Source of the DNA: Chrysemys picta bellii
Lineage: Eukaryota
Length of the DNA stretch: 64,000 bases
Reading direction: 5' to 3'
Assembly (NCBI RefSeq): GCF_011386835.1
Contig: NC_088806.1
Location: 31,496,001-31,560,000 of the forward strand
The notes under the pieces were generated by a model. That model was not told the DNA's origin. It saw nothing but the letters and a program-made list of their open reading frames with translations, and did not search any database. Of the stretch, positions 6,001 through 36,500 are shown in pieces. Every line of letters starts with the position of its first letter. Within the stretch, counting starts at the first letter, position 1. Both the position numbers and the translations under genes were made by a program.

Positions 6001-7721
6001 GGCTGAAGGCCAGGCTGTGGGAAGAGCCTCAGCCCGGCCTCTTGGAGAGAGGAAGGGAGGAAAGAATCCCTAGCACCAGGCCCGTGGGATCCATGGTGAC
6101 TGGGAGAGGGAAGCTGGAGCTGGCGAAGTACACATCCTGCCCCACTCCAGCTACTGCAGCAGTTGTCAAACAGGGTTCCACCCACTCGGCTCTAGGGGGG
6201 CGTGGTGCACTGACCTGGCCAGCACCAGGGCTTGGGCAGGGTTTGCAACGTGGGCTTAGGCTCAATCAGAAAAAACCTTGCCAGGTGCATTCAGTGCTGC
6301 AGGCTCTGGCCAGGCCGTGGCTGCAGACTCAGCTCATGTGGGCCCAGCCCGACACTCTGACCAGCCTGTGAACATCGTCACGCAGCGATGGTGACGAGCT
6401 CAGTGAGGGAGGTGGAGAATCCTAAACTGAGACTGGCTGGTGCCTTTCCCTGTCCGATAACCCTGAGGGCGACCTGCCCTGCTGGGACACGGAGCCCTGC
6501 CCCACGCTTTGCTCCACAGGTCTGTGGGCACGTCTGGCCATGGGGTTCTCAGAGGCACGACCCCCAGGGACCCCCCCAGGACTGTGGGAGAGACGATGCC
6601 GCGCAGTCTCTCCTTTGGGGCTCTCGGTGAAGTCAGAGGGGGTTGCGACATGCGCGCTAGCCACCTGGGGTCTGACAGTGTCACAGCTAAGGGCCCCTGG
6701 GAGAGGATACAGGGGACACCACGTGGCACACTCAGCTCCTCAGTGTAAACACTTGTATTCCTCTCCATGCAACCATCGGAGCACGCAACATGGGCTTCTT
6801 CCCCAGAGCTGATGGGCACTGCCGGGAGCCCTGCCAATGCAGAGTCCATTGATTCCCTGCTGCTGCTAGCTTTAGACTGCTTCTTTCCCGGATCTCCACA
6901 CTGCCCTGTCCCCTTACGCCCCTTTCCCCCAGTCTTGGGGGTAGCATTACCCGCAGCCTCTCCAAAGTGAACAACAGGCAGGGTTCCTAGTCACTGAAGA
7001 TGGGGAGTTGCTGTCCTTTTTCTCCTGCATTTCCCAATCTGTCTGAAAGCAAAGCCCCCCCCCCCCCCCCGAACACTACTTATGTTTTAATCTGACAGTC
7101 TCCTGCTTCCATTCCTGGCTCCATGGCAGGGCAGGGAAGCAAGGAACGGAGCCCAACAGGCCAACACGCTGCACACCCTGCTCCCCACCAGCAGCCAACA
7201 AAATGAGGGGCAGCCCCTCGATTGCATTCAAACACACACCACACACGTTTGACACTTTGCTTTTCAACCTGCCGGCTCAAAGGAGCAGCATTCCCCCTGC
7301 GCCGTTCCCCCTGCGCCGGGCACTACCCCACCTGCGCCAGGCACCCTCGGAGAGGCTGCAGAGAGCTATGCAGGCTGGCTTAGAGATGCAGACACAGCCA
7401 CGGAGCCGACTTTACAAAACGGTTCCTTTCTCATCGGTAACGTCAATAAAACCTGCCCATTAGCCCCTCTCTGTCCCCCGTTCTCATGTGGGCAGCAGCC
7501 AGCGCCGCCGTCCCTCACGCTCCCGCCGCGTCCCTTCCCCAGGATTCTGTGTGGGGCGACGACGCTGCGTTAACGGGGATGGTGCTCCCCAGCCGTGGGC
7601 TGCTGGGGCCCTGGCGGATGCCTGCATGCAAGATGTGCAATAGACACTTACCCAGAGAGACAAACAGGCTGAGCCCAGTGAGGCACCAGGTGAGCCGGAG
7701 AAGCCAAGGCTCCTTGCTCAT
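1..7721 (-). CDS. SCN2B: Sodium channel beta-2 subunit, multi-exon gene span (3' end runs off the window)
   Basis: The spliced product MSKEPWLLRLTWCLTGLSLFVSLAPCGLGMEITAQTTISALNGSSVRLPCTFNSCY...ECENCSEELFLQFRMK...YNCYVMNPPDRHRGH...VPPERDSTVAVIVGASVGGFLAVVILV is recognisably SCN2B. It keeps the FNSCY cysteine used for alpha-subunit linkage, the ECxNC pair, and the NGS/NWT/NCS sequons. Exons of 70/167/211 bp; phases are consistent. Confidence 0.97.
1222..1432 (-). CDS. SCN2B: SCN2B exon 3, second half of the IgV domain (211 bp)
   Basis: Acceptor ctgcccAG at 1434-1433, donor GTGGGT at 1221. Encodes FLQFRMKIVHWRLDRFGNRVEFTGNPSKNDVS...DEGTYNCYVMNPPDRHRGHARIFLKVITE. Confidence 0.96.
2114..2366. 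mobile_element. Degenerate PIF/Harbinger-type non-autonomous element (MITE), SCN2B intron 2
   Basis: GTCTACACT/GTGTAGAC terminal-type motifs; internal sequence resembles the element at 53028-53766. Boundaries are approximate. Confidence 0.5.
2440..2712. repeat. Interspersed repeat, inverted copy of the same family as 11015-11290
   Basis: gagaatctcagctttc and tctcatgattttgggggg are reverse complements of gaaagctgagattctc and cccccaaaatcatgaga in the 11 kb copy. Confidence 0.55.
2743..2909 (-). CDS. SCN2B: SCN2B exon 2, first half of the IgV domain (167 bp)
   Basis: Acceptor ttctcaccAG, donor GTAAGT at 2742. Encodes PCGLGMEITAQTTISALNGSSVRLPCTFNSCYKVENKLFSLNWTYQECENCSEEL. Confidence 0.96.
5277..5443 (+). 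mobile_element. tRNA-derived SINE with a CR1-like 3' tail (tortoise Pol III/SINE type)
   Basis: Head GGGAGGGATAGCTCAGTGGTTTGAGCA (A box) and GAGCTCAAGCC (degenerate B box); tail gggggttagactagatgacc resembles a CR1 3' end. Confidence 0.8.
7652..7721 (-). CDS. SCN2B: SCN2B exon 1, signal peptide (70 bp)
   Basis: GGAAA-ATG at 7721, encodes MSKEPWLLRLTWCLTGLSLFVSL, donor G|GTAAGT at 7651; phase 1 matches exon 2. Confidence 0.92.
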
Positions 7722-8837
7722 TTTCCAGGACCTTTGTGTGTGGCGAAGATTGTGGTGTTTGTTGTGGCTGCTTTTTGTTGCTGTTGGTTGGCTTTGTTTT
7801 TTTCAAGTGCACTGGGTGATTTCCAAGACACACATAATTTTAGAGCTGTTTTATTTCCCAACCTCCAATATGGCCGGCTGGAGGGTTGCTGCTATTAAAA
7901 AAAAAAAAAAAGCAGTAAATTTTATGGTTGGTGGATTCCATCAAAGGACATGGGAGGGTATCAAAATTTCCTCGGAAGCAAAGGAACATGCTCTCAGCGT
8001 CTCTCCTGCTCTGCACTCTGGGAGGTGGTTCTGGTGCCTGATCCTGTTTAAAATTGCCACCTTATCAAAGAGCAGAGTGGGTTTCCTCCTGAGCCAGTTA
8101 GTGCCTGTGATGAGGGCAGGAAGGGCTGTATTACTGCAAACTGTTAGTCTCTCTTCACCTTCTGGCCTAAGTAATCTGCAGGGTTTATTTCTCCTACAGA
8201 GACTCCCGGCATGCTCTGGTGACTACCACGTTAGCTAAGCACATACCTGAGCGATGCAGCCTGTGGTCTGGCTCAGTTTAACCCCCAGCAGGCCTGCCCA
8301 CCATGCCTTGCGTTGTGCGGACTCCGTCACCTTGGGTGTTATCTCACAGCTTCCCAAGCCCTGCCTGGCTTCCCTAGAGCAGAGAGTTACTTCCTCCTAG
8401 ACCTTGTGCAGGTGTGTTGAGTTGGAGGCAGGAGATGGGCAAGGGGCTGACTGCCCATCACGCTTTCCAGGGGAACGCCGGAGCTCTGGAATAACAGCTG
8501 CTTGGCAGTGGGGTGAGGAGAAGACCCCTGGTAGGGCAAACGCTGCCCTGGGCTCTGACAGGGTTTCCCTTGTTTTCCCCACAAAAGGAGACGGAAACGG
8601 GCTCTTTGCTGAGCCAGCAGTTCCCCTTCCCCATTATGAGGCTGTGACATCCAGGCCCTAGGCTGCAAACCGCCACCCACCTTCCTTTACATCTCCACAC
8701 CCAGCTGCTAACAACCTGAGCACTGATGTCCCAGGAGCTAATAAACCACCAGACACAGGGCCCTAGCGGCCAGCCAAGGCAATGCAGCATCTCCAGCGCA
8801 GAGCCGTGGTATGGGCTCTTACTGGGTGGGCAGAGGC

Positions 8838-11290: not shown

Positions 11291-12818
11291 GCAAAACTGT
11301 GGGACACGAACAGGGAAGCGTGTGTGTACACACACACACGGTGCAGGGCTGAGCACTGCCTCTAGTTTGTAAAGTGCCTCGTGACCCTGCTAGAGAGAAG
11401 GCACCTGAAGTATCAGATTATTCATTAAAGTACAGGATTATTATATACTAAATCACTAAGCAGATCTATTGATTGTGTAGCATGAAGTCTCCCAGCTACA
11501 ATGAATAGCCCCAGGCATTCCTGTCTGGGGCACTGTTAGCTCTGACATAACAGGCCCTTAGTCATTACCTACAGCTTTATATTTGTTTCAACTTCAATAC
11601 AAATTTGTTGGCATATTTTTTAAACCACTCACTCTGGTTCTTCTGCCTCACCAACAAAAAACGAGTGGGGTGGCAATGTGAAACAAACGACTGCAGCATA
11701 TAGCAACTTTTGCTGCATTGGCCCATGTGCCAGCGCTCAGGCTAAGAGTAGAGAGTGGTCCCCCATCCTTTCCAGGAATGGAGCGAGCCCATCTCAGATC
11801 ACTGCACGTGGAGGTGTCAAACATCTATATATAGAGCCTGGAGGGAGAGCTGGCCCCAGCAGAGGCTGTGCTCTGGGAGAAGGGTTCTAACCCCGGCGCA
11901 AGGGAAGAGACCAGGGCAGGGGAGGGAGCCGACCCGCTCAGAAATAAGGGGCTGAACCAGTCCCGTTGTTTGCTAGCAACTTGGAACCTCAGATGCAGAT
12001 TTTGTCCAGGTAGACCAGAGTAAAAGCCCCCGCCCCTGGCGTTACGGATCTGGAATATTCCTAGTTATTGCAAGTGTATAAATGAAGACACAAACACATG
12101 TAGGGGGTGGTGCTGCACATCTATTTACACACACAGAGCACTGGGTTTGCTACAGTTCAACTGAACTATTTCCCCAGGACGTCGGGTTGCTTGTTTCCCA
12201 TGTGGCTCTGGCAGAAGGTGCCAGGCTGGCAGCCTGGAGCCCGCTCGGTGCCCATGCAGCAGGCCAGCCCAGGCAGCTGCAGGGCACCCAACACCTGATC
12301 ACCCCCTCCTCCCTGTCTGGAGGTGGGACTCTCCCTGGAGTTCTCTCGCTGGGTTTTGACGGCACCGGCCAATATCCCAGCCGGAGCATGGAAGCTCTGC
12401 CACAGGGCACTGCCCGCCTGCAGAATGAGGGTGAAACCAGAGCAAAGTCCATTTACCTTCATCGCCCTCCTGTGCCCCACTCCTGGCCCGCCCCAGTTAG
12501 CAAGGAGTGCCCTCCCACTGCCCTGTCGCAGGCCAGGCCATGCTGGGCGCATGGCGCAGACGTGAAAGCAGCAGCAGCAGCCCCATCAGAGCGTGAAGTG
12601 ACCCTTTCGAAAATGTCCTCAATGAGCAGCAAGTCTACACAGCGCTGGGCACAGTGGGGCCCGGTCCTGGCTGGGGCTGGCAGGTGCTGTCACAGCACAA
12701 ATAGATTATAACCCGGACAGCGAGAGTGATACGGCCCATGCCCTGTACAGACTGAGAGGCAGCCCTGTGGCACGCTGACGGAGTGAGTAGAGTTTGTCCC
12801 TGGGGGAGGTCAATGTCC

Positions 12819-13052
12819 CTAGCTGTCGTGCCAGGCTGGGCTCAGAGGTGCTTTCCCCCCATCCAGGGCACAAGGGAATTCCTCCTCTGGGCAGTTGGAC
12901 TTTTCACAGGTTTTCTTGCTTTCTTGGGCTCCTTCATTGCACAGTCTCCCCTCATCCAGCCATTCCACTGGGATCTTCTTCCTCTGCAGCTGGACGTACA
13001 CGCTGTTCTCCAGCAGTGCAGTGCCCGCCCCATGGAAAGCAGCAGAGGGGCG
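12819..13052 (-). CDS. JAML: JAML last coding exon (cytoplasmic tail and stop)
   Basis: Acceptor tttgtcccctgcAG; phase-0 read RPSAAFHGAGTALLENSVYVQLQRKKIPVEWLD...WHDS*. Similarity to the mammalian tail is weak, so this is the least certain exon. Confidence 0.7.
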   Translation of the reverse strand, partial: RPSAAFHGAGTALLENSVYVQLQRKKIPVEWLDEGRLCNEGAQESKKTCEKSNCPEEEFPCALDGGKAPLSPAWHDS

Positions 13053-16000
13053 CTGCAGGGGACAAAGTGCAAAGCCATTAGCGCTGTCAGAGCCAGAGGG
13101 CTGTGTTAGGCCTGAGCCATACTAAAAAGGTGGATCAACCCAACTACGTCGGTCAGGTCCCGCTTTGCGTTGCCTTGCAGAGAGAGCAGATCCTGCCTTA
13201 GACAGAGAGTTCTAGAGAGTTTGCATCCAGAAGTCACCCATGATATTACATCCCCAATCCCCCATCATCTCCAAATGGGCTAGAACCCCACAGCTGGCCT
13301 GGAGGCAAACTGCCCACACTGTGCCCTGGAGTTGATATCAGTGGGGTCATGCCAGTGCATGGCAGGCCCTGTGTTTTGAGGAGACCCTGGTCTCCTCTCC
13401 TGCCCCAGCTGCTTGGACCTCCTGACACAAAGCTCACCATGGTAATGTAGGTCGTGTCCGTTCTGCTCCCCAGCTCTGCCTCCTGCCCAGCCTGGAGCAT
13501 CTCAGCACAGAGTATGAGGGAGTAAATGCCTTCCTGCCAGGAAGATCAGAAAGAGACTCAGGCCCTGCGTGGCCTGTGACATGCCCGTTCCAGAGGCTCA
13601 TTTCAGCTGGTGAGCTCTCCAGAGCAGAACCAGGCAGCCTCTGTTTTGAGAGTTCCCAGCATCTGGTGGGCAGGATGATAGACAAACGCTGAATAGCTCA
13701 CCGGAGGGCCCAGCTCTGCTCCAAACTCCTCGGCCTGCTCCCCTCCCCACCCACTCAGACATGCTGGGCAAGGGGTGAAGGGGTCACTTGCCAACAGCTG
13801 TATCAAAGCAGCCACCAGGGTAACCTGCATTACAGTAAATAAAGTGCATGCTGGCCAGCGGAGTCCCCAGCCTGGCAGACTGATGCCCACTAACTTGTGA
13901 CAACCACCAACACCAGATGCTGCAGAGGGAGCTGTGTAAAGCCCTCAATACACATCCAATGGGGCAGTCCTCTCCTCTGGGGGGAAACACCTTCCTGACC
14001 CCAGTGAGCAGCTCATGCTCTGAAGCATGAGGATTGAGCACATTGATCAGCTTATCCTAGCTAGTGTCACTGCAGAGGCGACCCTTGTGCTGGCTAGGAT
14101 TCATACTAAACTCCTTGCCTTCATAGTACCTAGCGTCAAAAAAACCTTGCATCCTCTGATGAAAGCTGAACAAATAGATACAATGTTAGACAAAGTAAAG
14201 GGCCGGTTTATTCCTAATGGGACCCCCACAAACCCTGGGAATGAAAAGTCCTCACCTCCCACTGAAGTCTATTCATCTGTGGGTGTTCAGGGCCTCTGTA
14301 TCTTTAAGGCCAAAACAACACTTTACCCTTCTCTGGTGTTTGTCATCTGAGGACATCAAAGCACTTCACAGACATTCATTAATGAAGCCTCATGCATGTT
14401 AAGGCAGGATCATGTTCCCCATTTTGAAGACAGGGAAACTGAGGCACAGAAGTGACATGACTTGCCAAGGGGGCTAAAGTGGAACTAGAATCCCAGAGTC
14501 CTGGTTCCCATTGCCCCAGCCTAACCACTAGCTTACACTCCCTGCACTGCCCTTCCACTAGTTATATCGCACACAGTCGTCTGTTCTACAACGTAGCAGC
14601 TCTTCTCCCACGTCCCTCCGACACCACGATAAATCCTACACCAGTCCTGGGCTGCAACAGCAACAAAGCGGCTGGGACAGACCTTGTCCCCGGCCCCAAA
14701 CCTTCTGCTTTGAAAATAAAGCTCTCGCCTCTGCCTGGGCATTCAGGGAGCAGCAGGAGCCCATTAGCTCACTTTGCTCCATGGACATTCTCTCCTAATT
14801 AGGAGTCAGGGCAGGATGGAATTATCTGGGGTTAATTCCAATCACCTCCTAACTCACGCCAATTATACAGCAAAACAAAGGCCAGGCTTTCCTTACTGCC
14901 GTAGGCGTGTGTGAACAGGCGCATTCAGTGCCTGGGGCAGGCTGGATAGCAGCTCGGCTGTCCCGAATCCTCCTTTTATTTCAGGAACTACCCTCCAGAT
15001 TCTGGCGTTTCCCTGTGACAGGGTCCGGCAGCATTAGCCCCACTCAGCTTGGCAAGCAGAGACTGAGCTCTCACCTCTCCTTTATCCCGGCTGCCGTCGT
15101 CCCGACTCCTCGACAGGGGCCCGCTCTCCATAGGTCTGGAAGGAATGTCAATTGCATGCAGGTGAAGAGCTGTGCGGGCTCCCCCAGGAGCCGCCATCTC
15201 CACCCATCCCCTCCATAGCTGAGGGTGTTAATTCCAGAGCTAGTGCCTGGCTCTGTCTGCATTTCCCCTGACACTCTGGCCTTCCCATTGGTCAGGAACC
15301 CTTGGCGACAGAAAGGAGCAAGGAAAGGCCAAGTCCACTGCTCAGCCATTCCATACCGGTGAGTCTGGGCTTCTGCCCATGCTCAGGTGTGGAGGGACTC
15401 TCACTCTGAGTGACTGGCCTTGCATCTACCCCACACACCTTGGCCTCGCTGCAGCCTGTGGTGCACAGAAGTGCTCCAGCCCCATCTGCAATTGCTACAG
15501 CCAGGTGCAGCTCCCCCCATCCGCCTGGGCCACGCAGGGGCACATGGGCCAGGCTATTTGGGACCCCAGCACTCTGCCTCCCATCCCTATCAGACAGGAG
15601 ATCTGTCTGTGGAACCAGGGCAATGTGGGATCAGGCATGTCAAGAAGAGGACACCCCCTACCCTCCCTGCCAGTGCTCCTAGAAGAGGCGGGTTCGGCAG
15701 GGACCGAAGGAGCACGGTGTGGAACCCCGGGAGCAGCCCTGCACTGGTGAGAGAGGAGAGGGCAGGGCAAGCCCATCAGACACAACTGAGCCACCAGGGG
15801 GCAGCAGAGGATAGTGTGTGTGGTCACCCCAAGCTGTCACAGGCCAGGATTCCCCAGGTGCTGAAATTCACCCGCATCCCACCAGCAACCCCCTCTCCCA
15901 TCCTGGCCTGTGGCAGGAGATAACCACCAGGCAGGATGATGCCACACCCGCCCTGCAGCCGTGGGAGCCAGGACCTGTTACCTCTGCTTCTGGAGAAACT

Positions 16001-19000
16001 TCTTCAGCCCCAATCCCAACAAGAGGGCCAGGAAGGTGGTCGCACAGACATAGCCCAGGATGGCCCCCCAGCCACTGCTACCGGAGCTCTCAGAGTACTG
16101 GGCCCCGGCAAATCCGGACCCTTGGGGGGAGAGAGACACATGCTGCAGGGTTAGCGATGTCTCTGCCCCAGCACACTAGCCACCAGGAGTCAGTCTCTGC
16201 CCAGCCCATGCTGACGGATGCCCAATACTGGGAGGGGCACATCACCCCCAAAGGCATCCAGGGGAGGTGGCTGTCTCCTCCCCTTTGTAACAGATTGGTG
16301 AGTTCCCACAGGACTGGGGCAGAGATCCGTTCCCAGGGAGCATAGCACGGAGCCGGGCGGCTGCACAAACCCGGGGATTTCTGCCCCAGTTCTCACACTT
16401 GGTGGCAAACCGGCCCTGGTGAGCCAGCACCACACTCCTGCTTGCACATCACTGTGACTGCATAGGGCTGCAGACAGCATGACCCATGGGGCCCTCCCAA
16501 CACAGACCCATCCTGGGCCAGGCCAGACAGTAGCTGGCACTAGAGACGGAAGGGCAGGGAGGCACTTGGCTTGGGGAAGGGGAGGCTGCCCCAAGCAAAG
16601 GGGTGAACCGGTGAGGCTGCTGTGAAATTGACCGATAGCAATGGGGGGCGCATACCTCTCCGTCCAGCAGAGGCCACATGCAGCACCGTGTAGTTTTTGA
16701 AGACGCTGCTCCGCCCAAACACCCGGATCTCGCAGGTGTACGTCCCACTGTCGTCCGCCTGTACATCCTGCAGCCTCACAGAGCCGTTCTTGCGGGCCAC
16801 ATCCCCCAGCCACTGCACTCGGGGCCGGAAGCGTCCCACAGGAACGCTGTGGTTACTGTAGTAGTAGAAGACCATCTCCTCCTGCAAGGGGATATGGCTC
16901 GTCATGTGACCAAGATAAGGGTGACATGTGATTGGATGCCAAGACACTCCCAAGTGTGAACTTAGTTCCTCTGAATATCCTCCCCGTCTGCTGCTCCGCC
17001 TGGCACCCCCACCCATACGCCTCATCCTGCCCTGGCGGGACGCTCTTCCGGGGTGAGCGGTATCACAGCCTAGGTCCCACTGGCTCTCTGCTGAAAGGCC
17101 CAACAAGGGGTCAGTCAGTCCCAGTTGATATGGTGGATTCTGTAACTTGAGCACCTAGGAACTGGGCTGAGGTGCATCAAAATCGCCTCACCCAGCGACC
17201 TCGGCGCAGCCGTCGGCCGGGAACAGCCTCTCTCCCGCCCAGCGACCTCGGCGCAGCCGTCGGCCGGGAACAGCCTCTCTCCTGCCCAGCGACCTCGGCG
17301 CAGCCGTCGGCCGTGAACAGCCTCTCTCCCGCCCAGCGACCTCGGCCGTGAACAGCCTCTCTCCCGCCCAGCGACCTCGGCGCAGCCGTCGGCCGGGAAC
17401 AGCCTCTCTCCCGCAGCGACCTCGGCACAGCCGTCGGCTGGGAACAGCCTCTCTCCCGCAGCGACCTCGGCACAGCCGTCGGCTGGGAACAGCCTCTCTC
17501 CCGCAGCGACCTCGGCACAGCCGTCGGCTGGGAACAGCCTCTCCCCCCTGGGCTGAGTTGGATTTCCAGCTCCCTTAGAAATTGCTGCTCTCTCTAAGCT
17601 GGATGGGATGAACGCTATCTCGGCCCCCAGGCGTCCCATTTGCCCTGGACCTGGGGTGCTCCCCTGGGCCTTTCCCGGCGATTGGACTCACCACCTGAGT
17701 ACTGTTTTCCGGCATATGTATCCAGTCCACTTTGGTCACATTCCAGTCCCCTGGCACCAGGCTTTGGAAGAAACATTCCAGCAGGACAGAGTCCCCTAGG
17801 CGAGCCTTCAGCTTGGGGCAAGTGATGACCCGGCCAGCCAACACGCCACCGTTCTCTGCAGGCACCAAGGAAGGAAGAGGGATGAGCCCAGAACTGAAGA
17901 ATCCAGCACAGTGCAGAGAACAGCAGTGCTGCCTGGGCCTGCTCATCCTCGAGACATCCCTTCCAACCCAGAGACCAACCCCCTCCCCGCATCCAGCCTG
18001 GCAGACCCTGCTCCCTTCCCACAGGCAGGGCCCTTCCCCACCCTCTGACTGCACAAAATGCTGCACTCCTAAACCAGCTCCTTCACAAAACGTCACCAAG
18101 ACCTGGGGAGCCAGGGCAGTTCCTTCCCGCCAGAGGGAGGGTCCATGCAGCTGTTCCACTGCCAGAGCCAGCCCTGGGGCCAAGTCTCCCCAGGCTGCTG
18201 GTAGAGTCATAGAGCCTCCCGACCGGGACATCAGAGCCAGCAGAGCGGGCTTTCCTTCTCTGCCCTCCCAGCAGCACCAGAGCGGGAGCCCTCGGACCGG
18301 GTCGGTGGAGGTGAGGGGCATTTCAAAGGACTGGAAGCAACGTCACGTGCAGGCCCACTGCTTTGCACACGTCACAGCTTGTTACGCCCAGACTGGGGCC
18401 TTGTCCCTCCACAGCCTGAAGCCAGGGTGATGCCATGATGGCCTGCTGCTAACCTGGCCTCTGGGAAGTGGGCAGAGCTGAGGATGAAGTGCTAGGTCTG
18501 CTATTGCCCCCCTAATGGGCATGGCCTCCCCTAGGGCCATGCTTCCGATTCACGCCTCGTACCCTCCATGGCAAGGGCCCGTGGTGCAGCCAAGACACAA
18601 ACTAAATGCTTCTGGCCCAGCCATTCCTCAGGACAGGCTCATTGCCGCGAGCCCCCAGCACTGCTGCCCTGGCACCTCGCCCTGGGAAGATCCCTTTTAC
18701 CAAGTCTTAGGGGTGGAGGGGTGTCAAAAACTGCACCCCAGGATTCATACTGGGCTTGCGCCAGCTGGGACAGGACGAGGCCACTTCGCTCTGCTCCACG
18801 GCGGCAGTCTTAGCGCTGCCAGTCCAGACATTCCAGCTAAGCCGGGCAGTGCAGCCCCACAGGGCCGGTTCTCCCAGCAGGGGAATCCCAGCCTCACTTC
18901 CTGTCGGCGGAGGCACGTCTGCATGGAACAGGCAGTAGGAAATCACTCCTCGCACGAGCCCCAGCCATGTTGCTCTTTTGAAGCAGAGGGCTCTGGTTCC

Positions 19001-19793
19001 TCATGAATGGCTTTCGTGTACCACTGCCTATCACAGAGTATCTGAGCACTCACACTCTAACGCAGTTCCCCTCCCAGCCCCCCAGGGAGGCAGGGCAGGG
19101 CTATTATCTCCATTGTGCAGAGGGAAACTGACACAGAGACTAAGTGACTGGCCCAAGGTCCCATAGGAAGTCTGTGGCAGAGCAGGGATTTGAACCCAGG
19201 TCCCTAGGTCTTAAACTAGTGCTCTGACCACTGGACTGGCCTTGCATCCTTGTGACGAGGATCATTCCAGCACCCTGAGCCTGGCATAGCACCAGGGCAT
19301 CGGCTGCATTTTGTGTGTGAATGTCCGTTCTCACAGCGCTTCCCTGTTTGCTTCCCCACCCCCGGCCCTGAAGCTCTCAGACCCAGCTGGCTGTGTCCTC
19401 GGCTTGTTTGCACAAGCAGTGACACAGCTATTGCTCAGAAGGCTGCTGGAGAACCCTGGCAGAGGAAACGAATGGAGCCGCGTCAGCATGTCCCGGCCTA
19501 CGCTGGCACAAAGCGCAAGCTGGAGACCCGAGGCACAGGAGGGGTACATGACTTGCCCCAGGCCACACTGACTCAGTAGCAGGCCTAGAAGAGTTCCAGG
19601 CTCCCAGACCCATGAGCTCCCTCACAGTGGATGGCCTGGGCTCTGAAATTCGCTGTCATGGGGATCTCTAAGCAAAGGGAGGGGAAAGCAGGCAGTGTTT
19701 CCAGGGGTGCAGGCGAGGGGGGCAAAAGCAGGATCTCCGCTTACCCAGTGACATCAGTATCCGCATGAGCGTCAGGGCAAGTACCATTCTCAT
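12819..19793 (-). CDS. JAML: Junction adhesion molecule-like (JAML/AMICA1) orthologue, 7 coding exons, 322 aa, single IgV domain
   Basis: Syntenic position between SCN2B and MPZL3. Similarity to human JAML: EMVFYYYSNHSVPVGRF vs EYVLYYYSNLSVPIGRF; YTCEIR; TM GYVCATTFL vs GIVCATILL; IYSLI...TYITM vs IYSPI...TYMTM. CDS 49+164+226+139+61+96+234 = 969 nt with consistent phases. Confidence 0.9.
13438..13533 (-). CDS. JAML: JAML cytoplasmic exon with YxxM motif (96 bp)
   Basis: Acceptor tcttcctggcAG, donor ATG|GTGAGC; encodes EGIYSLILCAEMLQAGQEAELGSRTDTTYITM. Confidence 0.88.
14340..14531 (-). mobile_element. MIR/CORE-SINE-like relic
   Basis: cccattttgaagacagggaaactgaggcacagaagtgacatgacttgccaag resembles the CORE domain. 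Confidence 0.7.
15075..15135 (-). CDS. JAML: JAML juxtamembrane cytoplasmic exon (61 bp)
   Basis: Acceptor attccttccAG, donor GAG|GTGAGA; phase 2 to 0 links the flanking exons; encodes (R)PMESGPLSRSRDDGSRDKGE. Confidence 0.8.
15791..15804 (+). promoter_or_regulatory. Candidate CTCF-binding site in a JAML intron
   Basis: CCACCAGGGGGCAG matches the CTCF core consensus CCASYAGRKGGCRS. Motif only. Confidence 0.5.
15982..16120 (-). CDS. JAML: JAML transmembrane exon (139 bp)
   Basis: Acceptor tctctccccccaAG, donor AG|GTAACA; encodes (G)SGFAGAQYSESSGSSGWGAILGYVCATTFLALLLGLGLKKFLQKQ. Confidence 0.9.
16656..16881 (-). CDS. JAML: JAML IgV second-half exon (226 bp)
   Basis: Acceptor cccttgcAG, donor G|GTATGC; encodes EEMVFYYYSNHSVPVGRFRPRVQWLGDVARKNGSVRLQDVQADDSGTYTCEIRVFGRSSVFKNYTVLHVASAGRR. 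Confidence 0.93.
17194..17545. repeat. CpG-rich minisatellite, about 8 units (47,47,47,35,45,45,45, partial)
   Basis: Unit agcgacctcggcgcagccgtcggccgggaacagcctctctcccgccc, starting at 17194, 17241, 17288, 17335, 17370, 17415, 17460 and 17505. Confidence 0.95.
17692..17855 (-). CDS. JAML: JAML IgV first-half exon (164 bp; alternative donor would end it at 17695)
   Basis: Acceptor ggtgcctgcAG; encodes (E)NGGVLAGRVITCPKLKARLGDSVLLECFFQSLVPGDWNVTKVDWIHMPENSTQV; donor GTG|GTGAGT. Confidence 0.88.
19020..19236 (-). mobile_element. MIR/CORE-SINE-like relic
   Basis: agggaaactgacacagagactaagtgactggcccaaggtc...gggatttgaacccagg. Confidence 0.7.
19745..19793 (-). CDS. JAML: JAML signal-peptide exon (49 bp coding; preceded by a splice acceptor, implying an upstream non-coding exon)
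   Basis: ctctcccctttttAG AGTGAA ATG; encodes MRMVLALTLMRILMSL; donor G|GTAAGC at 19744; phase 1. Confidence 0.85.
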
Positions 19794-22629
19794 TTCACTC
19801 TAAAAAGGGGAGAGACAAGTTAACACCAGCTGCATGGGCCCCTGCTCTCTCCAGGGGATGCACAGCACCTTAGGCACAGCCTTGGCCCAAGCTTTAACAA
19901 GACGCACACCTGAACCATGGCAAAGCAGGTGCCAGGTGGCAGGGGACTTTCTGGTGACTGCGCTATTGCGTTGGTACAAACTCCCTTTAGGTGACAGGCA
20001 GGGCTAGAAACCACCCCAGTGAAACCCCAGAGAGTAGAGCTCCCACCTTCGGGAGCAGTTCCCTCCATCACTCTGTCTAGTAATTGTATCACAGCCACAT
20101 CCCAGCCTATCGCCCACAAGAAGGTGATTCGGAGATGAACTAGGTTGCTGGACTGACACTTCCTTTGCTTTCACTGAGATGGATTGACCTATAAATCCCT
20201 GAGGCTGAGGGAGTAGTTTAATGAATCCACCAAGTCCCAGCCATTACAACACTCTTTGAAAACCAAGAGGCAGCTGTCAGATACGTTTCTGGTTTGAGAC
20301 AACTCTGAGCTATGTGAAGGGGAAGTTGACGAGAGCTCATGCTCTGGTTTTAAAATTTCCTTTTGTGTAATGAACTTTGAGCTTGGTTTGAGGCCTAAGG
20401 TTTCTGTAGAAATAGGAGGTGGTTAGGTTGGGTTCGTTCACAGATGCTGAGGGAGGTAATAGGAAGTAAGTGTTTGTCTGAAGATTAAGGCGTCTGGATT
20501 GTTAATATCAGCATAATCTCCCTGTTAAAGAGTGCTCCGGAAAAGTCTGAGCCCCCCTCAATGCGGTCAGATCACACAGTAACACCTTTAGTCACTAGCA
20601 ACAAGGGCTGATTTCAAACAGTGTAAACCTCTATAAGGAGAACTTCTTTTGGGACCCCTGAAATGTCCCATTTTTTACTAAATGAATAAAAAATTGTAAT
20701 AATGACTGAAAGTTTGTTCCAGCTGCATTTCTGCATCAGACAGAATTAGCTCTGTGTTTACAGGCACAAATCAGTGGAAGAAGCATTCAGTGTGACACTG
20801 TGTTCCAAGCGAAGAGAAAAGCTGAATGAATGCAGGTACACTCAGAGCTGCGCTTTTGCTCAGCATCTGATGAACTCTTTAAGAACAAGAAGTTCTTGGG
20901 AAAAAATCCTCCAGTCTGTGAAATACACACGAGTGTCGCTATTGCCAGCTTTGGATTCAACAGTAAGAATAGCAAACTAGACACATACAACACATGCACA
21001 GTCTCTTGTGTGAGAATTTTGTTACTCTAAAAACTGTCACCACTAAATCAGCCTGTTTTTTATTTTGAAAATCTTCTCCCTTTCTGTCTCTCATTCCTGC
21101 GGCCCTGGACAAGCCAGTGCCCCTAAAACAAATTTCAATATGATTTTGAGATGGGGTTTATCAATCCCCAAGAAACAGGGATGCTAATGAAAAGGAGCTA
21201 GAGTAAACCTGCCTCGTGTAGTAGATTTAAAGTAAAGTCGTGTTTATTCCTGACCGCTCTCAGAGAATAAAAATCACTGCTTTCAGCACTGGTGCAGTAG
21301 GAAGCAACGAGTGACCAGTCCGAGGTATTTAGATGGCAAGGATGGCAAGCTCTGTGAGGCAGAGACTGTCTCCTTTGTGCTCTGCAGAGCTGAACACCCA
21401 AACAACAGTAACCAGTGAACATGGATGGTACACACCTGGGGATGTAAGAGAGAGTGTGTTGGCTGTATGCATGTGCTATGGAATGGTCTGAAATGATAAA
21501 ATGCTGGGATAGTACAAAACCAATCGGGAGAGGAAAATTCCACACCCAGTCTGCGGATCCTCACTACAAAGGATTTCACCTCTTCTCACAGACAGACATC
21601 GCTGCAGATTTCTTTTCCTCATGCAACTGTAGTTGCACAGCTCCGTGAAAACTGATAAAGCCCCTGCAGCTCCCGGAATGGAACCCAGAGCCATCACCAG
21701 CTGCCAATGATGCAAAATTGCTTTTGAGATTGAGAAATGAAGACTTTCCAAGCTGCTCAAGTGCTTGGCTAAATACAATGGTATAAATGGACCCTGCCTT
21801 CCATTGTCCTCTGTGTGTTTGTAGAATCAAAGTCCAGCTAGCAGTAGCAAGGACCTCTGTAATTCTCCTTGCTTGTGCTTCTCAGTAAAGAAATGTTTGT
21901 AAAAAGAATTAAGTATTTAGAATCTGCCTATTACAGTTCTGCCTGAGAGGTCTAGCCTGCACTCAGGGCTTGCTTGGAGCATGTGTTGTACATACGTATG
22001 ATAAACAAAGCAAAACTTCATGCACACAGCTCCAAAATCCCTGGCTGCAGCATTCCCAGTGCAGGTTGGTCACGCTCCTCCTAATTCTCATGTGGGGCTA
22101 GATTGTCATAACAACCTCTCCAGTTAAGCACTTAAATAGGGGACAAGTTTCCAGAAGTGCTCACTATCCAGCAGTTCCTATCGTGACACTTATGGACAGA
22201 GTTTCAAAACATCTCAGCACCTAACAGGCCCCCAATCACTGAGCTCATTGGAGAATCTGACTCTTAGCATCACCAAATCCTCCATGTATTTATTACCTTA
22301 TTACTCAGAATCCCATCACTGACTCAGTTTAAGTATTTCCGCACAGCAAATCTGGCAGCAGGTGCTGTGTGTTGCAACTGACAATGGAGTTAGCTCATTG
22401 GGGTTCTGTCAAGTACATTATGACACTAAGATATCACAATCCTTCCATGGTATAATTGTCCCTCGCAAGAACCTTAACTCAATGGATTTGGAACCAACAG
22501 TGCCCTTCTGTTCTCCTGCTATTGAGCACTGGGAGCTTTCAGCTGCTAGGTAGCTGAGCTCAGAGCATTTAAACATTCCCGACCTCTGCTCTCAGAAAGA
22601 AAATGAATACAAATTATTCAGACACTCAC

Positions 22630-22720
22630 CAGAGAGTTTGTAGCAGACCTCCAGCTTCTCACGCAAAGTGTCCTCCGCTGACTAATTCAGAGACCTACAG
22701 AGCTTCTATGATGGCCTAAG
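22630..22720 (-). other. Candidate non-coding first exon of JAML (only the donor is located; 5' end unknown)
   Basis: Strong donor CTG|GTGAGT at 22629, the best match seen upstream of the ATG exon acceptor. No transcript evidence. Confidence 0.3.
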
Positions 22721-30500: not shown

Positions 30501-33500
30501 CTTCAATGGATGATTTCTTATAGCCAGATTTTTTTCTATGCTTTAGGACTCCAAATTTCCTTCCCATCCTCACCAGCAGCAGAATGACCACAATGGCAGA
30601 GGGGAGGAACACTAAGATGGATAGCAACACTGCTGAAGTTAGCTGGAAAGAAAAGCCTGCAGGAGAGAGAGAGAGAATAGCAGTAGAATATGGCTTTGTT
30701 TTATCTCTATGGCAAATATTAATCCAGCACACAGCATCCTGGCCTTTTTTATAAAAAGCACAGGGCTTGCTGGGGTTAAAGGAACTTGTGACAAAGTCCG
30801 GTCAGGGAACTCAAATTCAGAACTAGACTCCTCCCATGGAGGGGAGGACAAAGATTACATCTATCTGGCTGCAGTGAAGGAGCACAAGTTAGGCTATGTC
30901 TACACTGGCAACTGAATGACAAAACTTTTGTCTTTCAGAGGTGTTAAAAAAAACACCCCCCCAAAAGACAAAAAAGTTTTTGCCAACGACAAGCACCGGT
31001 GTGAACAGCACTTTGTCAGCAGGAGCACTCTCCTGCCAACAAAGCTAACCCATTCGTTGGGGTTAGAAGGTTTTGTCGGCAGGAGAACCAACAAACAGCA
31101 GGTACACGGTGTGACTTTTAGCAGCACGGCTGTAGCAACACAGCTGTGTCGCTAAAAGCTGTGTAGTGTAGACACAGCCTGAGAGCAGCACATTCAAAGC
31201 CAAGTGAGAGGGGAGTCGCATCAAACTGATGGACACACCCAATCCGCAAGCCCAAGGACCGCTCTCTCATACAGGGTAGATGAGGCATTTGCCTAAGGCA
31301 GCTATTCGTTAATGTTTGTGAAACGCCAAGTCACTGTTAAGATATCCGCTCCCAGCAATGCTACCCGATTAATGCTGTACCCTCTGCGGTGGGAATCCGG
31401 GACTGCCAATCTTGTGTACTGAGCCTCTGCTGAGGGATGCCCATCACCTCCACTCCCACCTCCTGTCCCCTGTACATGCGCTGACCCCCAATGAAGTTTG
31501 GGATGATCTGAACTCCTAAGACAGACACCAGGGTAGATGCCTGCTCTTAGGAAAATGCTGCTGGCTTCTTCCGTCTCCATGCAGGACAGACACAACCTTA
31601 AGTTTTCACCAAAAGATCACACACCAAACTGCATGGATCTCAATTTATCTAGCTGGAAAGGAGAGGGGCTGAGCTGATGCCCTGGTTGCATTTAAATCTG
31701 TAGTTCCAGGAAAGCTAGACACCAGATCTGGTGCTTGGACTCCAAAGATTTCTGGCAAAACAGGAATGCACTCATGATATATAAATAGGGAGAATATTGC
31801 CATGCTAGAGACTTACCCCTGTGTGTGACTGTCAGCTTGGTCTGGGGGATGTTGTGGTGCACATCCGGGGGATTCTTCACAGCACAGGTGAACGTCCCAT
31901 TGTCATTCATCGTCAAGTTTTGGATAGCAATGGAGGCATCACCTTTGGCAACGTTCCCAACCCATGAAATTCTGTCTCTGAATGTTCCCACTACAGCTGG
32001 GTATGCAACAGACTGATAATGAAAAATCTGAAGGGGGAAGACAATAATTGTTCCAATAAGTCATTTTCCAAAAAGGAGAGAGAAAAAACCTCCTTTCGGA
32101 GAGTAACGGAACCAAAATGAACGACCCTTTCACAGGCATCCCACCTCAGATACACCAGGGGCTCACAAACCCACAACGCTGGGCACTATTGCACCAGCTT
32201 TTCAGATCTTTTTATATTTTTACCTAGGGGGAAGAGAGAGGGTGGAAATGCATGTCAGGGTCTTCCATATCCATGATACAGCCCCGAGGATCTCCCTTCT
32301 TGCCCACCAGTCTCCAGGGCTCGCATCAGAGTCACCATCATCTTTCTGACTATGGAGGATCTAAGAAGAGGATGCTCTGGTGCAGTGGTTCTCAACCTGC
32401 GGCCCGCTTACAGCCCAATCAGCACACAGCTGTGGCCCATGTGACATCCTCAGGGCCATACAAGTAATATATATTTTGTGTGGATGTGGCCCACATAACA
32501 CATAGAAAGCTGCATATGCGGCCCACAATGGTAAATAGGTTGAGAACCACTGCTCTGGAGGTTAGGGTACTATCCTGCGACTATGTGACCGTGGGCAAGT
32601 CACTTAGTTATTCTCTGCCTCGGTTTCCCAACTGTCAAGTAGGGATAATAGCACATCACTACCTCGCAGGGGTGTTGTGAGGATAAATACATTAGGATTG
32701 TGAGACACGATGGTAATACCTGAGACAGACAGCTTTTCAAGATAATCAGTTAAAGCAACAAGGTGGGTGAGGTAATCTTTTACTGAACCAACTGTCGTTG
32801 GTGAGACACACAAGCTTTCGAGCCACACAGAGCTCTTCTGCAGGTCACGGCTACAAATACACCGCATGCAATCAGTTCCTTGGTCATCTGGCAGTGCCAG
32901 TCCAGAAATGTAGTGCTCCCTCCCCAGCTCTTTGTAAAGCACTGGAACCTTGTCACAGGCATGGCATGACTGAATGCTGCAGCTCTGCAGATCTGACTTT
33001 AGTTCACAAAATAGTGCTAACTTCCCTTCAGTTCACTCCTGCTGGCTGGCCACAGGGGACTTACCAGAGCCTATTTCACACAGACACCACCGCATCCTTC
33101 CAGTTGCAACCTACCATTCCCAGGAGCTCAACCTCAGCTGAGCAGAGGAACTCACTGATGATTTACACAGAGAATGAGACATTTATGAACGGATTTTACA
33201 TCTATGCACCTGTGACTGGATTTCATACCACTGCCAACAATAACTGGTAAGAGCCCATAAATCCTTTAGGACCATCTGTCATCATCAGTGCCTGCAGACT
33301 GGCTCTCCACACACACCGCTGCCACTCCAAGATAAGTTATACCTGCATTCTGCCACATGGCAAAGCTGCCACGGTATGTTCTGCACGGGAAGCTTTCCAA
33401 ACCACGTGATCCCCAGTGCATTTATATGGATGCCTAGTTTGCAATGCGACAGTCATCTCTTAGGGTTCTAATACTTTGCATTTACATGGTACCATTCGGC

Positions 33501-36500
33501 CCAAAGGATTTCAAAGAAATTCAACCTATTTATATACAGCAGCACTGAAATGCAGTCACATCTGCAGTGGAAGGTGATAACCAAAGAGCCCACCACACAG
33601 CAGAGAAGCACACTGAGACGAACACTGACTTTTTACACAAAATGCCACGGGATCTTCAACCGTCCCACAGAGTTCTGCCCAGCTGCAAGAAAGATTCTTT
33701 GGGACACTCATCTGCAAGCACTTACTGTCTCCGTACGACCACCTGTGAGGGGCTGGTAACTCCAGTCTACAGTCAGCTTCTGAGTTATGGGAGAGACGGA
33801 ACTGAATGAGCATTTCAGGGTCACCTGTTCATCAACAAAAGCTTGTACTTCAGGATCCACTTTAATTTCCAATGAAAGAGCATTGCAGACACCTGGTGAA
33901 ACGAGCCCCAAAGAGAAAGATTAGATGGGAATTTTTGTAAGGGACACAAGTGAGATAGCAAAGCCGCCCCAGTGAAGAACTGATGGCTGTCTGAATCTGC
34001 ACATACATCTATCCCATCCCCTTGCACCCACCCAACCCCTATTGTTCCGAGGTCACTACCAAAGCCCTCCATTACCCAGTCAAGGGGATAAACAAGCCAA
34101 AGAGTAGGTAATCGAACGCAACTGGACCAGAGGGAAGGTCCAAAGTGCCAACTTCAGGGCTCTTCTTCTCATTAATAAATCAGCACACAGTCCCTCTCCT
34201 GAAGTTCTGTTCTGCATTTGCTCATGCCTGTCTTCTTTATTTTGTAAGCTGTTTGGTGCTGAAAACATGCTTCTTTTTAAGTTTGTAAAGCGCTATATAA
34301 GTTTATGGCATTACAGAAGTGTTGTCCATAATAAATACAAAATAGGGAGACTTGAAAACAAATTACGGTATTTTTTCCAGAAATGTAAACAAGTCTTAGT
34401 CCAACTGCCTGGACTGTAGAGCGAAGGAAGCAAAGGGAGGTGGGAAAAAGTCACAACTGTCAAGAATTGTAGCCAGGGTCTCAGAAAGTCTGATGGGGAA
34501 AAACCATTGGCAAGTGAGTTTATCAAAGGACTTCAAAAAGGGATTTGTTCCATCATCATAAAAACATGGTAAGAAGATAAGAATGGCCATACTGGCTCAG
34601 AATAATGGTCCATGCAGCCCAGTATCCTGTCTTCTGACAGTGGCCAATGCCAGGTACTTCAGAGGGAATGAACAGAACAGGCAATGATCAAGTGATCCAT
34701 CCCCTGTCATCCACTCCTAGCTTCTGGCACTCAGAGGCTAGGGACACTCAGAGCATGGGGTTGCATCCCTGACCATCCGGGCTAATAGCCATTGATGGAC
34801 CTATCCTCCATGAATTTATCTAGTGCTTTTTTGAACCCTCTTATACTTTTGGCCTTCACAACATTCTCAGTGATGAGTTCCACAGGTTAACTGTTTGTTG
34901 CGTGAAGAAGTAACTAGTCATTCAGAAGACACTAAAAATTAACACTTAGACCATGTAGCACTTTTCACTCAAACATCTCTAAGAGCTTTACAAAGGTGAA
35001 TGGGAATCACTCAGCACAGTTACAGATGAGGAAACTGAGGCCCAGACAGGTGAAGTGATTTGCCCAAACAAGTCACTGACAGAGACAAGGATCGAACCCA
35101 GATGGCCTGACTCCCATTCTAGTGCTCCCCGTCCCCATATCCATTTCTATTGCTACAAATACCTCTAAATGATGGAGTGTCTATAGCCAGGGCCCAAACA
35201 CCGGCATCAGGGGAGGCTCTGCTCCCTAGACAAAGCCTGGACATTTCAACGGCACTTATGCACCATTTCAAATGCTAAGGCTGCACCTAACGCAAGGCCC
35301 TCACTCGCCCCCACCTACTGCTGATGGATCCAAGCTGGGAACTGGTGTGTCCAGGTGACTCAGAAAGCTTGCCGGGGTGCAGCTGGGTTACTGTTACTCA
35401 ATCACTTCTGGGACACCCCATCTGAAGTTACTTACGCTCCCCACCCCAAACGTCTCACTCTTCTCTTTAACTGCCCCAAAACCCTCTCTGCCTCTAAAAC
35501 ACTGGGGGAGGAGGGGAAGACTAGTCACACCCTCCACCAAAACAGAACCCCCTAAAATAGTTCCCCTAAATGTACAAACCACAGATGTACCCTCCATCAG
35601 GCTGCCCCAAACACGCTGCCAACCCCACAATAATCCTCTTTCGATTAATCCCACAGACACACCCCTCCCAAATTCCTGCATCCCTCAACCAAACCCCCTT
35701 CTTCACCTGTCCCACAAATCCAGCTCCTGCCCCCATGTCTGGTCTTTCCACCTCCAACCTGGACCACCAGACACACCCCCAACCCCACAAGTCGCCATAG
35801 CCCTCCATCCACAACCCCTAGTCCTACAGCCCTCCTCAGTTCCACCCCATCATCCCCAATCTCACAGACCCACCCCTGGCCCCAACTCCTCATCCACCCC
35901 CCAACACCCCCAACCCCACAGACCCACCCCCAGTTTCCCTAGGCCCCCCATCCCCACACAGTCACCCCCAGTTCCCCTGGGCCCCCCATCCCCACAGACC
36001 CACCTCCAGTTCCTCTGAGCCCCCCATCCCCACAGACCCACCCCCAGTTCCTCTGAGCCCTCCAACCCCACAGACCCACCCCCAGTTCCCCATAGCCCCC
36101 ATCCATGCCCCGGTCCTCCTGCCCCCCCCATCACCCCCCAACCCCACAGACCCACCCCCAATTCCCCTGGGCCCCCATCCCCACAGACCCACCCCCAGTT
36201 CCCCTGAGCCCCCATCCCCACAGACCCACCCCCAGTTCCCCTGGGCCCCCCAACCCCACAGACCCACCCCCAGTTCCCCTGGGCCCCCCAACCCCACAGA
36301 CCCACCCCCAGTTCCCCTGGGCCCCCCAACCCCACAGACCCACCCCCAGTTCCCCTGGGCCCCCCAACCCCACAGACCCACCCCCAGTTCCCCATAGCCC
36401 CCATCCATGCCCCGGTCCTCCTGCCCCCCCCATCACCCCCCAACCCCACAGACCCACCCCCAGTTCCCCTGGGCCCCTATCCATGCCCCGGTCCTCCTGC

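Follow-up and report, generated by a model that had tools for sequence, protein, structure and literature searches.

In mouse and human, JAML carries two tandem V-set immunoglobulin (Ig) domains, D1 and D2, and the locus described here raises the question of how many such domains its turtle counterpart has and which of the two forms is the older one. The gene lies on the minus strand of a stretch of 64,000 nucleotides from Chrysemys picta bellii (contig NC_088806.1, positions 31,496,001 to 31,560,000, assembly GCF_011386835.1), which was analysed at its full length and is called the window below; all coordinates are those of the window. This gene is the turtle orthologue of JAML and has eight exons. 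A sequence-only reading of the same DNA had assigned a single Ig domain to it and had left two explanations side by side, a mammalian-lineage duplication that gave rise to D2 or the loss of D2 in turtles. Our results confirm that the turtle JAML gene encodes one Ig domain, of the V-set type; the tandem pair of mouse and human JAML was found neither in the gene nor in its protein. Considering all data together, it is very probable that the gene is a JAML orthologue in an ancestral, MPZ-like one-domain form and that D2 arose later, most likely on the eutherian stem.

The window was read for the ends, phases and splice sites of the exons, and the pieces were translated one by one. All exons are on the minus strand, and the V-set domain is split over two of them. 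Exon 3 (17692..17855; ig hidden Markov model (HMM) match at 1.7e-19) encodes the first half, strands A to C'. It is entered in phase 1 after tgcag and left in phase 0 at GTG/gtgagt, and its product, NGGVLAGRVITCPKLKARLGDSVLLECFFQSLVPGDWNVTKVDWIHMPENSTQV, contains the Cys of strand B (LLEC) and the Trp of strand C (VDW). Exon 4 (16656..16881) encodes the second half (EEMVFYYYSN...DDSGTYTCEIR...VLHV) and matches the Pfam V-set family at 8.6e-15 and the ig HMM at 1.6e-42. It is entered in phase 0 after ttgcag, gives the product EEMVFYYYSNHSVPVGRFRPRVQWLGDVARKNGSVRLQDVQADDSGTYTCEIRVFGRSSVFKNYTVLHVASAGRR and is left in phase 1 at GAG/gtatgc, its end reading GACGGAGAG/gtatgc. The next exon is already that of the membrane anchor. 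Exon 5 (15982..16120; phase 1 in, phase 2 out) begins after ...ccccaag with GG, which completes a Gly codon, and encodes a Ser/Gly-rich stalk (SGFAGAQYSESSGSSGW), the hydrophobic span of a transmembrane (TM) helix and the stop-transfer sequence KKFLQKQ, ending at AG/gtaaca. Both the phase 1 end at 16656 and the phase 1 start at 16120 are thus as first described. Between them lies intron 4 (16121..16655), 535 bp with gt...ag borders; the window contains 0 N.

The 535-bp intron had been said to hold no Ig-like frame, and our searches agree. HMMs of the sauropsid JAML Ig domain, of eutherian D1 and of eutherian D2 were run against all stop-to-stop fragments in six frames, and significant matches were confined to the two half-exons of JAML and the corresponding pairs of MPZL3, MPZL2 and SCN2B. 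Neither 16121-16655 nor the other JAML introns gave a match to the D1, D2 or ig HMMs in any of the six frames, the best stray hit having an E-value of about 0.7. Searching the window with the exon peptides by tblastn returned only three further V half-exons (32027-31875, 47868-47716 and 1390-1283), and the V half-exon peptides found no match in intron 4. The six-frame scan excluded 36 bp of JAML intron 2 (19170-19205); a half-domain exon needs about 160-230 nt, so this segment cannot contain one.

The junction from 16656 to 16120 is seen in RNA of a related turtle. Logan contig L001, 1643 nt long, matches the window over eight collinear blocks with 91-98% identity, namely 22688-22635, 19800-19745, 17855-17692, 16881-16656, 16120-15982, 15137-15074, 13535-13438 and 13053-12188, of which four were trimmed at their edges to gt/ag (19799-19745, 15135-15075, 13533-13438 and 13052-12188). 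It links 16656 straight to 16120, and intron 4 is absent from it. Because this contig skips seven introns at canonical sites, it must be of RNA origin, and the join is therefore shown in a close relative. The same join is made by the RefSeq Chrysemys picta bellii isoform X2 (P0001, 290 aa), which is 100% identical to the window over exon 4 and reads ...VASAGRRGSGFAGAQYSES... across it. A word search with exon 4 matched P0001, the models of nine more turtle species and two Logan-assembled proteins (338 aa each, from contigs of 1.6-2.2 kb), and all these turtle proteins read ...VLHVASAGRRGSGFAGAQYSES... or a close variant.

One could argue that a second Ig domain is present and was missed, in an alternative exon, through a collapse of intron 4, or in a second JAML gene elsewhere. 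The junction was observed in a relative and not in reads of this species, a 64-kb window of the genome was read, and the 36 bp at 19170-19205 stood outside the scans. Nevertheless, no other Ig-like frame occurs in 12188-22688, and the models of at least ten turtle species and two Logan transcript sets agree on one domain. No two-domain turtle protein appeared in a protein search reaching up to 569 aa, nor in a profile search of 1.84 billion representatives made without regard to length, and DNA runs contain 0.88-0.92 of the words of the region. We thus regard a missed domain as exceedingly improbable.

The one-domain form is not peculiar to Chrysemys. A single V-set domain was present in JAML of all non-eutherians examined (5 turtles, 2 crocodilians, 4 birds, tuatara, platypus, 6 marsupials, lungfish, coelacanth, ray-finned fishes and sharks). 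The domain HMM found one domain in 25/25 non-eutherian proteins tested and two in 11/11 eutherians, which covered Xenarthra, Afrotheria, Laurasiatheria and Euarchontoglires; the human JAML entries P0331, P0335 and P0346 were kept outside all comparisons. A search with the Gopherus protein (candidates of 179-569 aa) recovered the JAML of turtles, crocodilians, many birds and the tuatara, and Pfam marked one V-set stretch in every genuine sauropsid model checked. A profile of twelve sauropsid JAMLs (A1), scored against the 1.84 billion representatives, added the platypus (four isoforms, 293-308 aa), the African lungfish, the coelacanth, two sharks, a ray, gar, bowfin, paddlefish and tarpon. These proteins had a single matching stretch each, except the lungfish with a second one, and the domain HMM recognized one Ig domain in all nine of the added proteins that were scanned, lungfish included. 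With a marsupial protein as query, nine marsupial species were found with proteins of 219-289 aa and one V-set domain, whereas the eutherians retrieved by the same search were about 330-415 aa long with several Ig-type Pfam families. Pfam counts confirmed this, sloth and aardvark having two stretches against one in each of six marsupials, the platypus and the lungfish. Since the two-domain ectodomain is limited to eutherians, it marks the eutherian form and not the gene family.

Four sauropsid entries with two Ig domains (P0022, P0077, P0112 and P0114) were considered as two-domain JAML and rejected; their first Ig domain is of the MPZL3 or MPZL2 type, so that they are read-through chimeras of neighbouring genes. 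Together with P0013, P0029 and P0052, they make up a set of chimeric or mis-named public entries. In the Limosa 'JAML' (518 aa), MPZL3 is fused to JAML, and three further entries, the Crocodylus 'MPZL2' and one each from Melopsittacus and Coturnix, are MPZL2/3-JAML read-throughs. Conversely, the Emydura 'MPZL3 X2', the Heliangelus 'MPZL2 X3' and the Aphelocoma 'myelin P0-like' entries score as JAML orthologues. In the tuatara model (P0058 / P0126), the C'-strand segment EEMVFYYYSN..., which all other JAMLs conserve, is missing and the N-terminus is long and non-homologous, so that the model probably has an annotation or assembly defect.

The distribution of the two forms bears directly on whether turtles lost a domain. 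If the tandem pair were older than the amniotes, and turtles or all sauropsids had lost D2, the remaining turtle domain should be orthologous to D1, and exon 4 does score better against mouse D1 (57 bits) than against mouse D2 (38.6 bits). Against such a loss, one domain was found in all sauropsids, lungfish, coelacanth, ray-finned fishes (gar, bowfin and tarpon among them) and sharks examined as well as in platypus and marsupials. With one domain in so many lineages, an ancient pair would need many independent losses. The six-frame scan showed no relic of D2 in the window, and in an approximately unbiased (AU) test a tree with D2 outside all amniote domains was rejected, at the borderline (p = 0.048). 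A loss of D2 in turtles is very unlikely, and on this sample it is close to certain that the one-domain state of the turtle gene is ancestral. Thus, the sequence-only reading was mistaken in framing the turtle as the unusual case, since it is the eutherians that form the derived lineage.

The relationships among the domains were examined in a maximum-likelihood (ML) tree of 50 domains (LG+C20+F+G4), rooted on MPZL2/MPZL3 domains. Eutherian D1 and D2 together formed one clade (99/96), which was sister to the marsupial domain (99/88) and then to that of the platypus (92/92), with the sauropsid domains outside. D2 was monophyletic (100/99), on a longer branch (0.25). Mean identity was 58.8% between D1 and D2 of the same species, 59.7% between marsupial domains and D1, and 50.9% between marsupial domains and D2; the platypus domain was 42.0% identical to D2, and the turtle domain was 48.4% identical to D1 and 39.7% to D2. 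The exon layout of other mammalian loci was also compared. In the aardvark (L003), D2 has its own split exon pair, with D1a at 6011-6220, D1b at 7677-7994, D2a at 13072-13392 and D2b at 16619-16879, followed by the TM exon at about 20119. This is what would be expected from a tandem duplication of a two-exon module, and it bears out the proposal that D2 came from a split-V exon pair. In the turtle, the V module is in phase 1 at both ends, so that its gain or loss keeps the frame. The loci of platypus (L002) and Tasmanian devil (L004), both N-free, hold one split Ig half-exon pair followed by the TM exon, with no further match and no D2 relic. It is therefore probable, and we hold this with good confidence, that the two-exon V module was duplicated in tandem on the eutherian stem, once the marsupials had branched off, and that D2 is the product. 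The idea of an MPZL-like one-domain ancestor and a later duplication is upheld by these data, and only its node has to be moved: platypus and nine marsupial species are single-domain and in the best tree the duplication falls on the eutherian, not the mammalian, stem.

Several points weigh against this reading, some on the timing and some on its base. The domain alignment has just 115 columns, and AU tests did not reject trees with D2 outside marsupial domains plus D1 (p = 0.34) or with D2 outside all mammalian domains (p = 0.23). Squamates and amphibians yielded no JAML among the matches of the protein searches, although tuatara, lungfish and coelacanth did; this could reflect loss, strong divergence or missing annotation. 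The junction is supported by a transcript of a relative, 91-98% identical, and by annotation models, not by own-species reads. The AU results leave room for an origin of D2 on the therian or the mammalian stem, with the pair lost again in marsupials and, for the older version, also in monotremes. The longer D2 branch points the same way, as the placement of D2 could be distorted by it. Such an earlier origin would leave the turtle form ancestral. We nevertheless consider it unlikely: the ML tree joins D1 and D2 with the marsupials excluded, D2 is nearer to the D1 of its own species than to the marsupial domain, neither the devil nor the platypus locus contains a relic, and one or two additional losses would be required. 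Given that the AU tests are weak, the timing on the eutherian stem rests on the ML topology, on parsimony applied to where D2 is present or absent, and on the relic-free loci of platypus and devil.

Turtle JAML is a type I membrane protein. Its signal peptide is followed by one V-set Ig domain, a flexible Ser/Gly stalk some 25 residues long, a single TM helix and a YxxM-bearing tail. When residues 1-190 of the Chrysemys protein were modelled with AlphaFold2 on a 19-sequence alignment (A2), the model had one confident V-type sandwich (blocks 31-120, predicted local distance difference test (pLDDT) 80-94), a stalk disordered at residues 129-165 (pLDDT < 50) and a TM helix at 163-189. The top three Foldseek matches were 3mj7, 3mj9 and 3mj6, all JAML, with 40% identity over 109 columns, followed by MPZ, MPZL1 and Nav beta-2. 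Among PDB sequences, exon 4 was likewise closest to mouse JAML 3mj6 (also 3mj7 and 3mj9; 1.9e-27), and in the domain tree the turtle V domain falls among JAML domains, apart from the MPZL2/MPZL3 outgroup (100/95). Solved structures and domain tree thus agree in placing the turtle domain closest to JAML D1.

In the tail of the protein, exon 7 closes with TTYITM, and NSVYVQL and KKIPVEW follow later. The YxxM motif, of the PI3K p85-docking type, is present in the turtle and was found in platypus, marsupial, eutherian, lungfish, shark and gar representatives. JAML of mouse and human binds CXADR, by way of its membrane-distal V domain, and triggers a PI3K cascade (PMC9041367), and the PDB entry 3mj7 is, by its title, the JAML-CAR complex. 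By analogy, turtle JAML might bind CXADR in trans through its sole V domain, as mouse D1 does, and PI3K docking on the phosphorylated YxxM would relay the signal. Compared with eutherians, the gap to be spanned would then be shorter by one Ig domain. It is plausible, as already suggested from the sequence, that the shorter ectodomain alters the geometry of the JAML-CAR contact.

The remaining exons complete the gene. Exon 1 (22635..22688) is a 5' leader, covered by block 1-54 of L001 at 98% identity. In the relative, this block opens an open reading frame (ORF) in exon 1 (MREKLEVCYKLSE, then MRMV...). Translation of window positions 22666-22635 gives LREKLEVCYK where the transcript of the relative has MREKLEVCYK..., and with a Leu codon instead of Met, the window probably does not give rise to the N-terminal extension of 13 residues. 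Exon 2 (19745..19799; L001 block and splice context) carries the start codon and the signal peptide (MRMVLALTLMRILMSL), ends in phase 1 at TGG/gtaagc and gives a product that agrees with the N-terminus of RefSeq P0001. Another candidate signal exon, at 25738-25678, was rejected because the transcript of the relative uses 19799-19745. Exon 3, also an L001 block, reads ITCPKLK, where the Chrysemys RefSeq model and other turtle models have ITRP; this additional Cys early in the V domain is also seen in crocodilians (TCPEL). Intron 3 contains a GC-rich, non-coding tandem repeat of about 45 bp in 8 copies (17191..17547; Tandem Repeats Finder score 525, 90% matches), which occupies much of the intron between the two V-domain halves, is absent from L001 and gives long spurious ORFs on both strands, e.g. 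17115..17639.

Downstream of the TM exon, exon 6 (15075..15135; L001 block, splice context and translation) is cytoplasmic (PMESGPLSRSRDDGSRDKGE). Exon 7 (13438..13533; L001 and splice context) is a 96-nt cytoplasmic cassette in phase 0-0 (EGIYSLILCAE...TDTTYITM) and holds the YxxM motif. It is absent from the RefSeq isoform X2 and present in P0003 and P0006, and the UniProt entry A0A8C3I7E1 (P0002) reads through its donor. Since the cassette is skipped in one model and its donor read through in another, JAML isoforms with and without the PI3K-type motif may exist, as judged from these sequence models. Exon 8 (12188..13052; L001 796-1643, ORF 12819..13001) completes the tail (RPSAAFHG...NSVYVQLQRKKIPVEWLDEG...WHDS, stop at 12821-12819) and contains the 3' untranslated region.

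JAML sits between SCN2B and MPZL3/MPZL2, all on the minus strand, the neighbours being named by sequence and order. Their V-exon pairs were located by tblastn and the six-frame HMM scan: an SCN2B-like pair at 938-1504 and 2668-2985, an MPZL3-like pair at 31695-32060 and 33711-33920, and an MPZL2-like pair at 47626-48156 and 48813-49154. The order SCN2B-JAML-MPZL3-MPZL2 is also the human one, and this conserved position with a shared strand supports orthology of the turtle gene with JAML.

A one-domain turtle model is already present in RefSeq and UniProt, as are bird, crocodilian, platypus, marsupial, lungfish and coelacanth models, and as a gene the turtle JAML is an ordinary orthologue with existing annotation. 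What the analysis usefully adds is the polarity of the change, eutherians having gained D2. Our literature searches found no paper on the number of JAML domains outside eutherians or on the origin of D2. A 2025 review describes the JAML ectodomain as unusually large for the JAM family (about 255 versus about 210 residues), with a functional meaning that is unexplained (PMC12237671). We think it likely that D2, and with it the compact D1-D2 ectodomain, is a placental innovation and that the other jawed vertebrates sampled use an MPZ-like one-domain JAML. If this is true, any contribution of D2, be it spacing, rigidity, cis contacts or another function, is a eutherian add-on. The natural one-domain JAMLs of marsupials, monotremes, birds and reptiles permit asking whether D1 alone suffices for CXADR binding and PI3K signalling, and their comparison with two-domain orthologues permits dissecting the contribution of D2. 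Moreover, the results call for caution in transferring structural models of mouse or human JAML to non-eutherians, and they reveal mis-named and chimeric JAML/MPZL entries in the databases.

Among known systems, the Chrysemys RefSeq model has the same exon joins and differs from the window in a few residues; e.g. the window has L instead of P in the signal peptide and C instead of R in ITCPKLK, and two residues of the stalk differ. The window is therefore not from the RefSeq individual but from a different one or from a close relative. The other non-eutherian JAMLs of RefSeq and UniProt (e.g. Gopherus, Alligator, Dromaius, Ornithorhynchus, Sarcophilus, Protopterus and Latimeria) share the same plan of one V-set domain, stalk, TM helix and tail. 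The end of the turtle tail, ...VYVQL...IPVEW, is common to sauropsid and platypus models, whereas the marsupial tail that was read (P0157) and two tails of eutherian type (P0124 and P0125) end differently. Eutherian JAML (AMICA1; mouse 3mj6, 3mj7 and 3mj9) is orthologous to the turtle gene and stands in the same neighbourhood. The turtle V-set domain is 43-54% identical to its D1, the V domain is likewise split over two exons, and TM helix and YxxM tail are common to both; in contrast, the eutherian protein has a compact D1-D2 tandem, and the turtle has one V-set domain, with a disordered stalk where D2 stands. The beta/MPZ subfamily comprises MPZ (P0), MPZL1/2/3 and the sodium-channel beta subunits (PMC10506104). 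Its members resemble turtle JAML in their single membrane-distal V-set domain on a short stalk and in the splitting of that domain over two exons. A tail segment with the YxxM motif of JAML was not seen by eye in the MPZL2-type models P0190 and P0166 or in the MPZL3 half of P0022, no motif scan having been made. MPZL2 and MPZL3 are separate paralogues that form the outgroup clade of the domain tree, and since tree and synteny place the turtle gene as JAML, its likeness to MPZ and MPZL is one of architecture and not of orthology.

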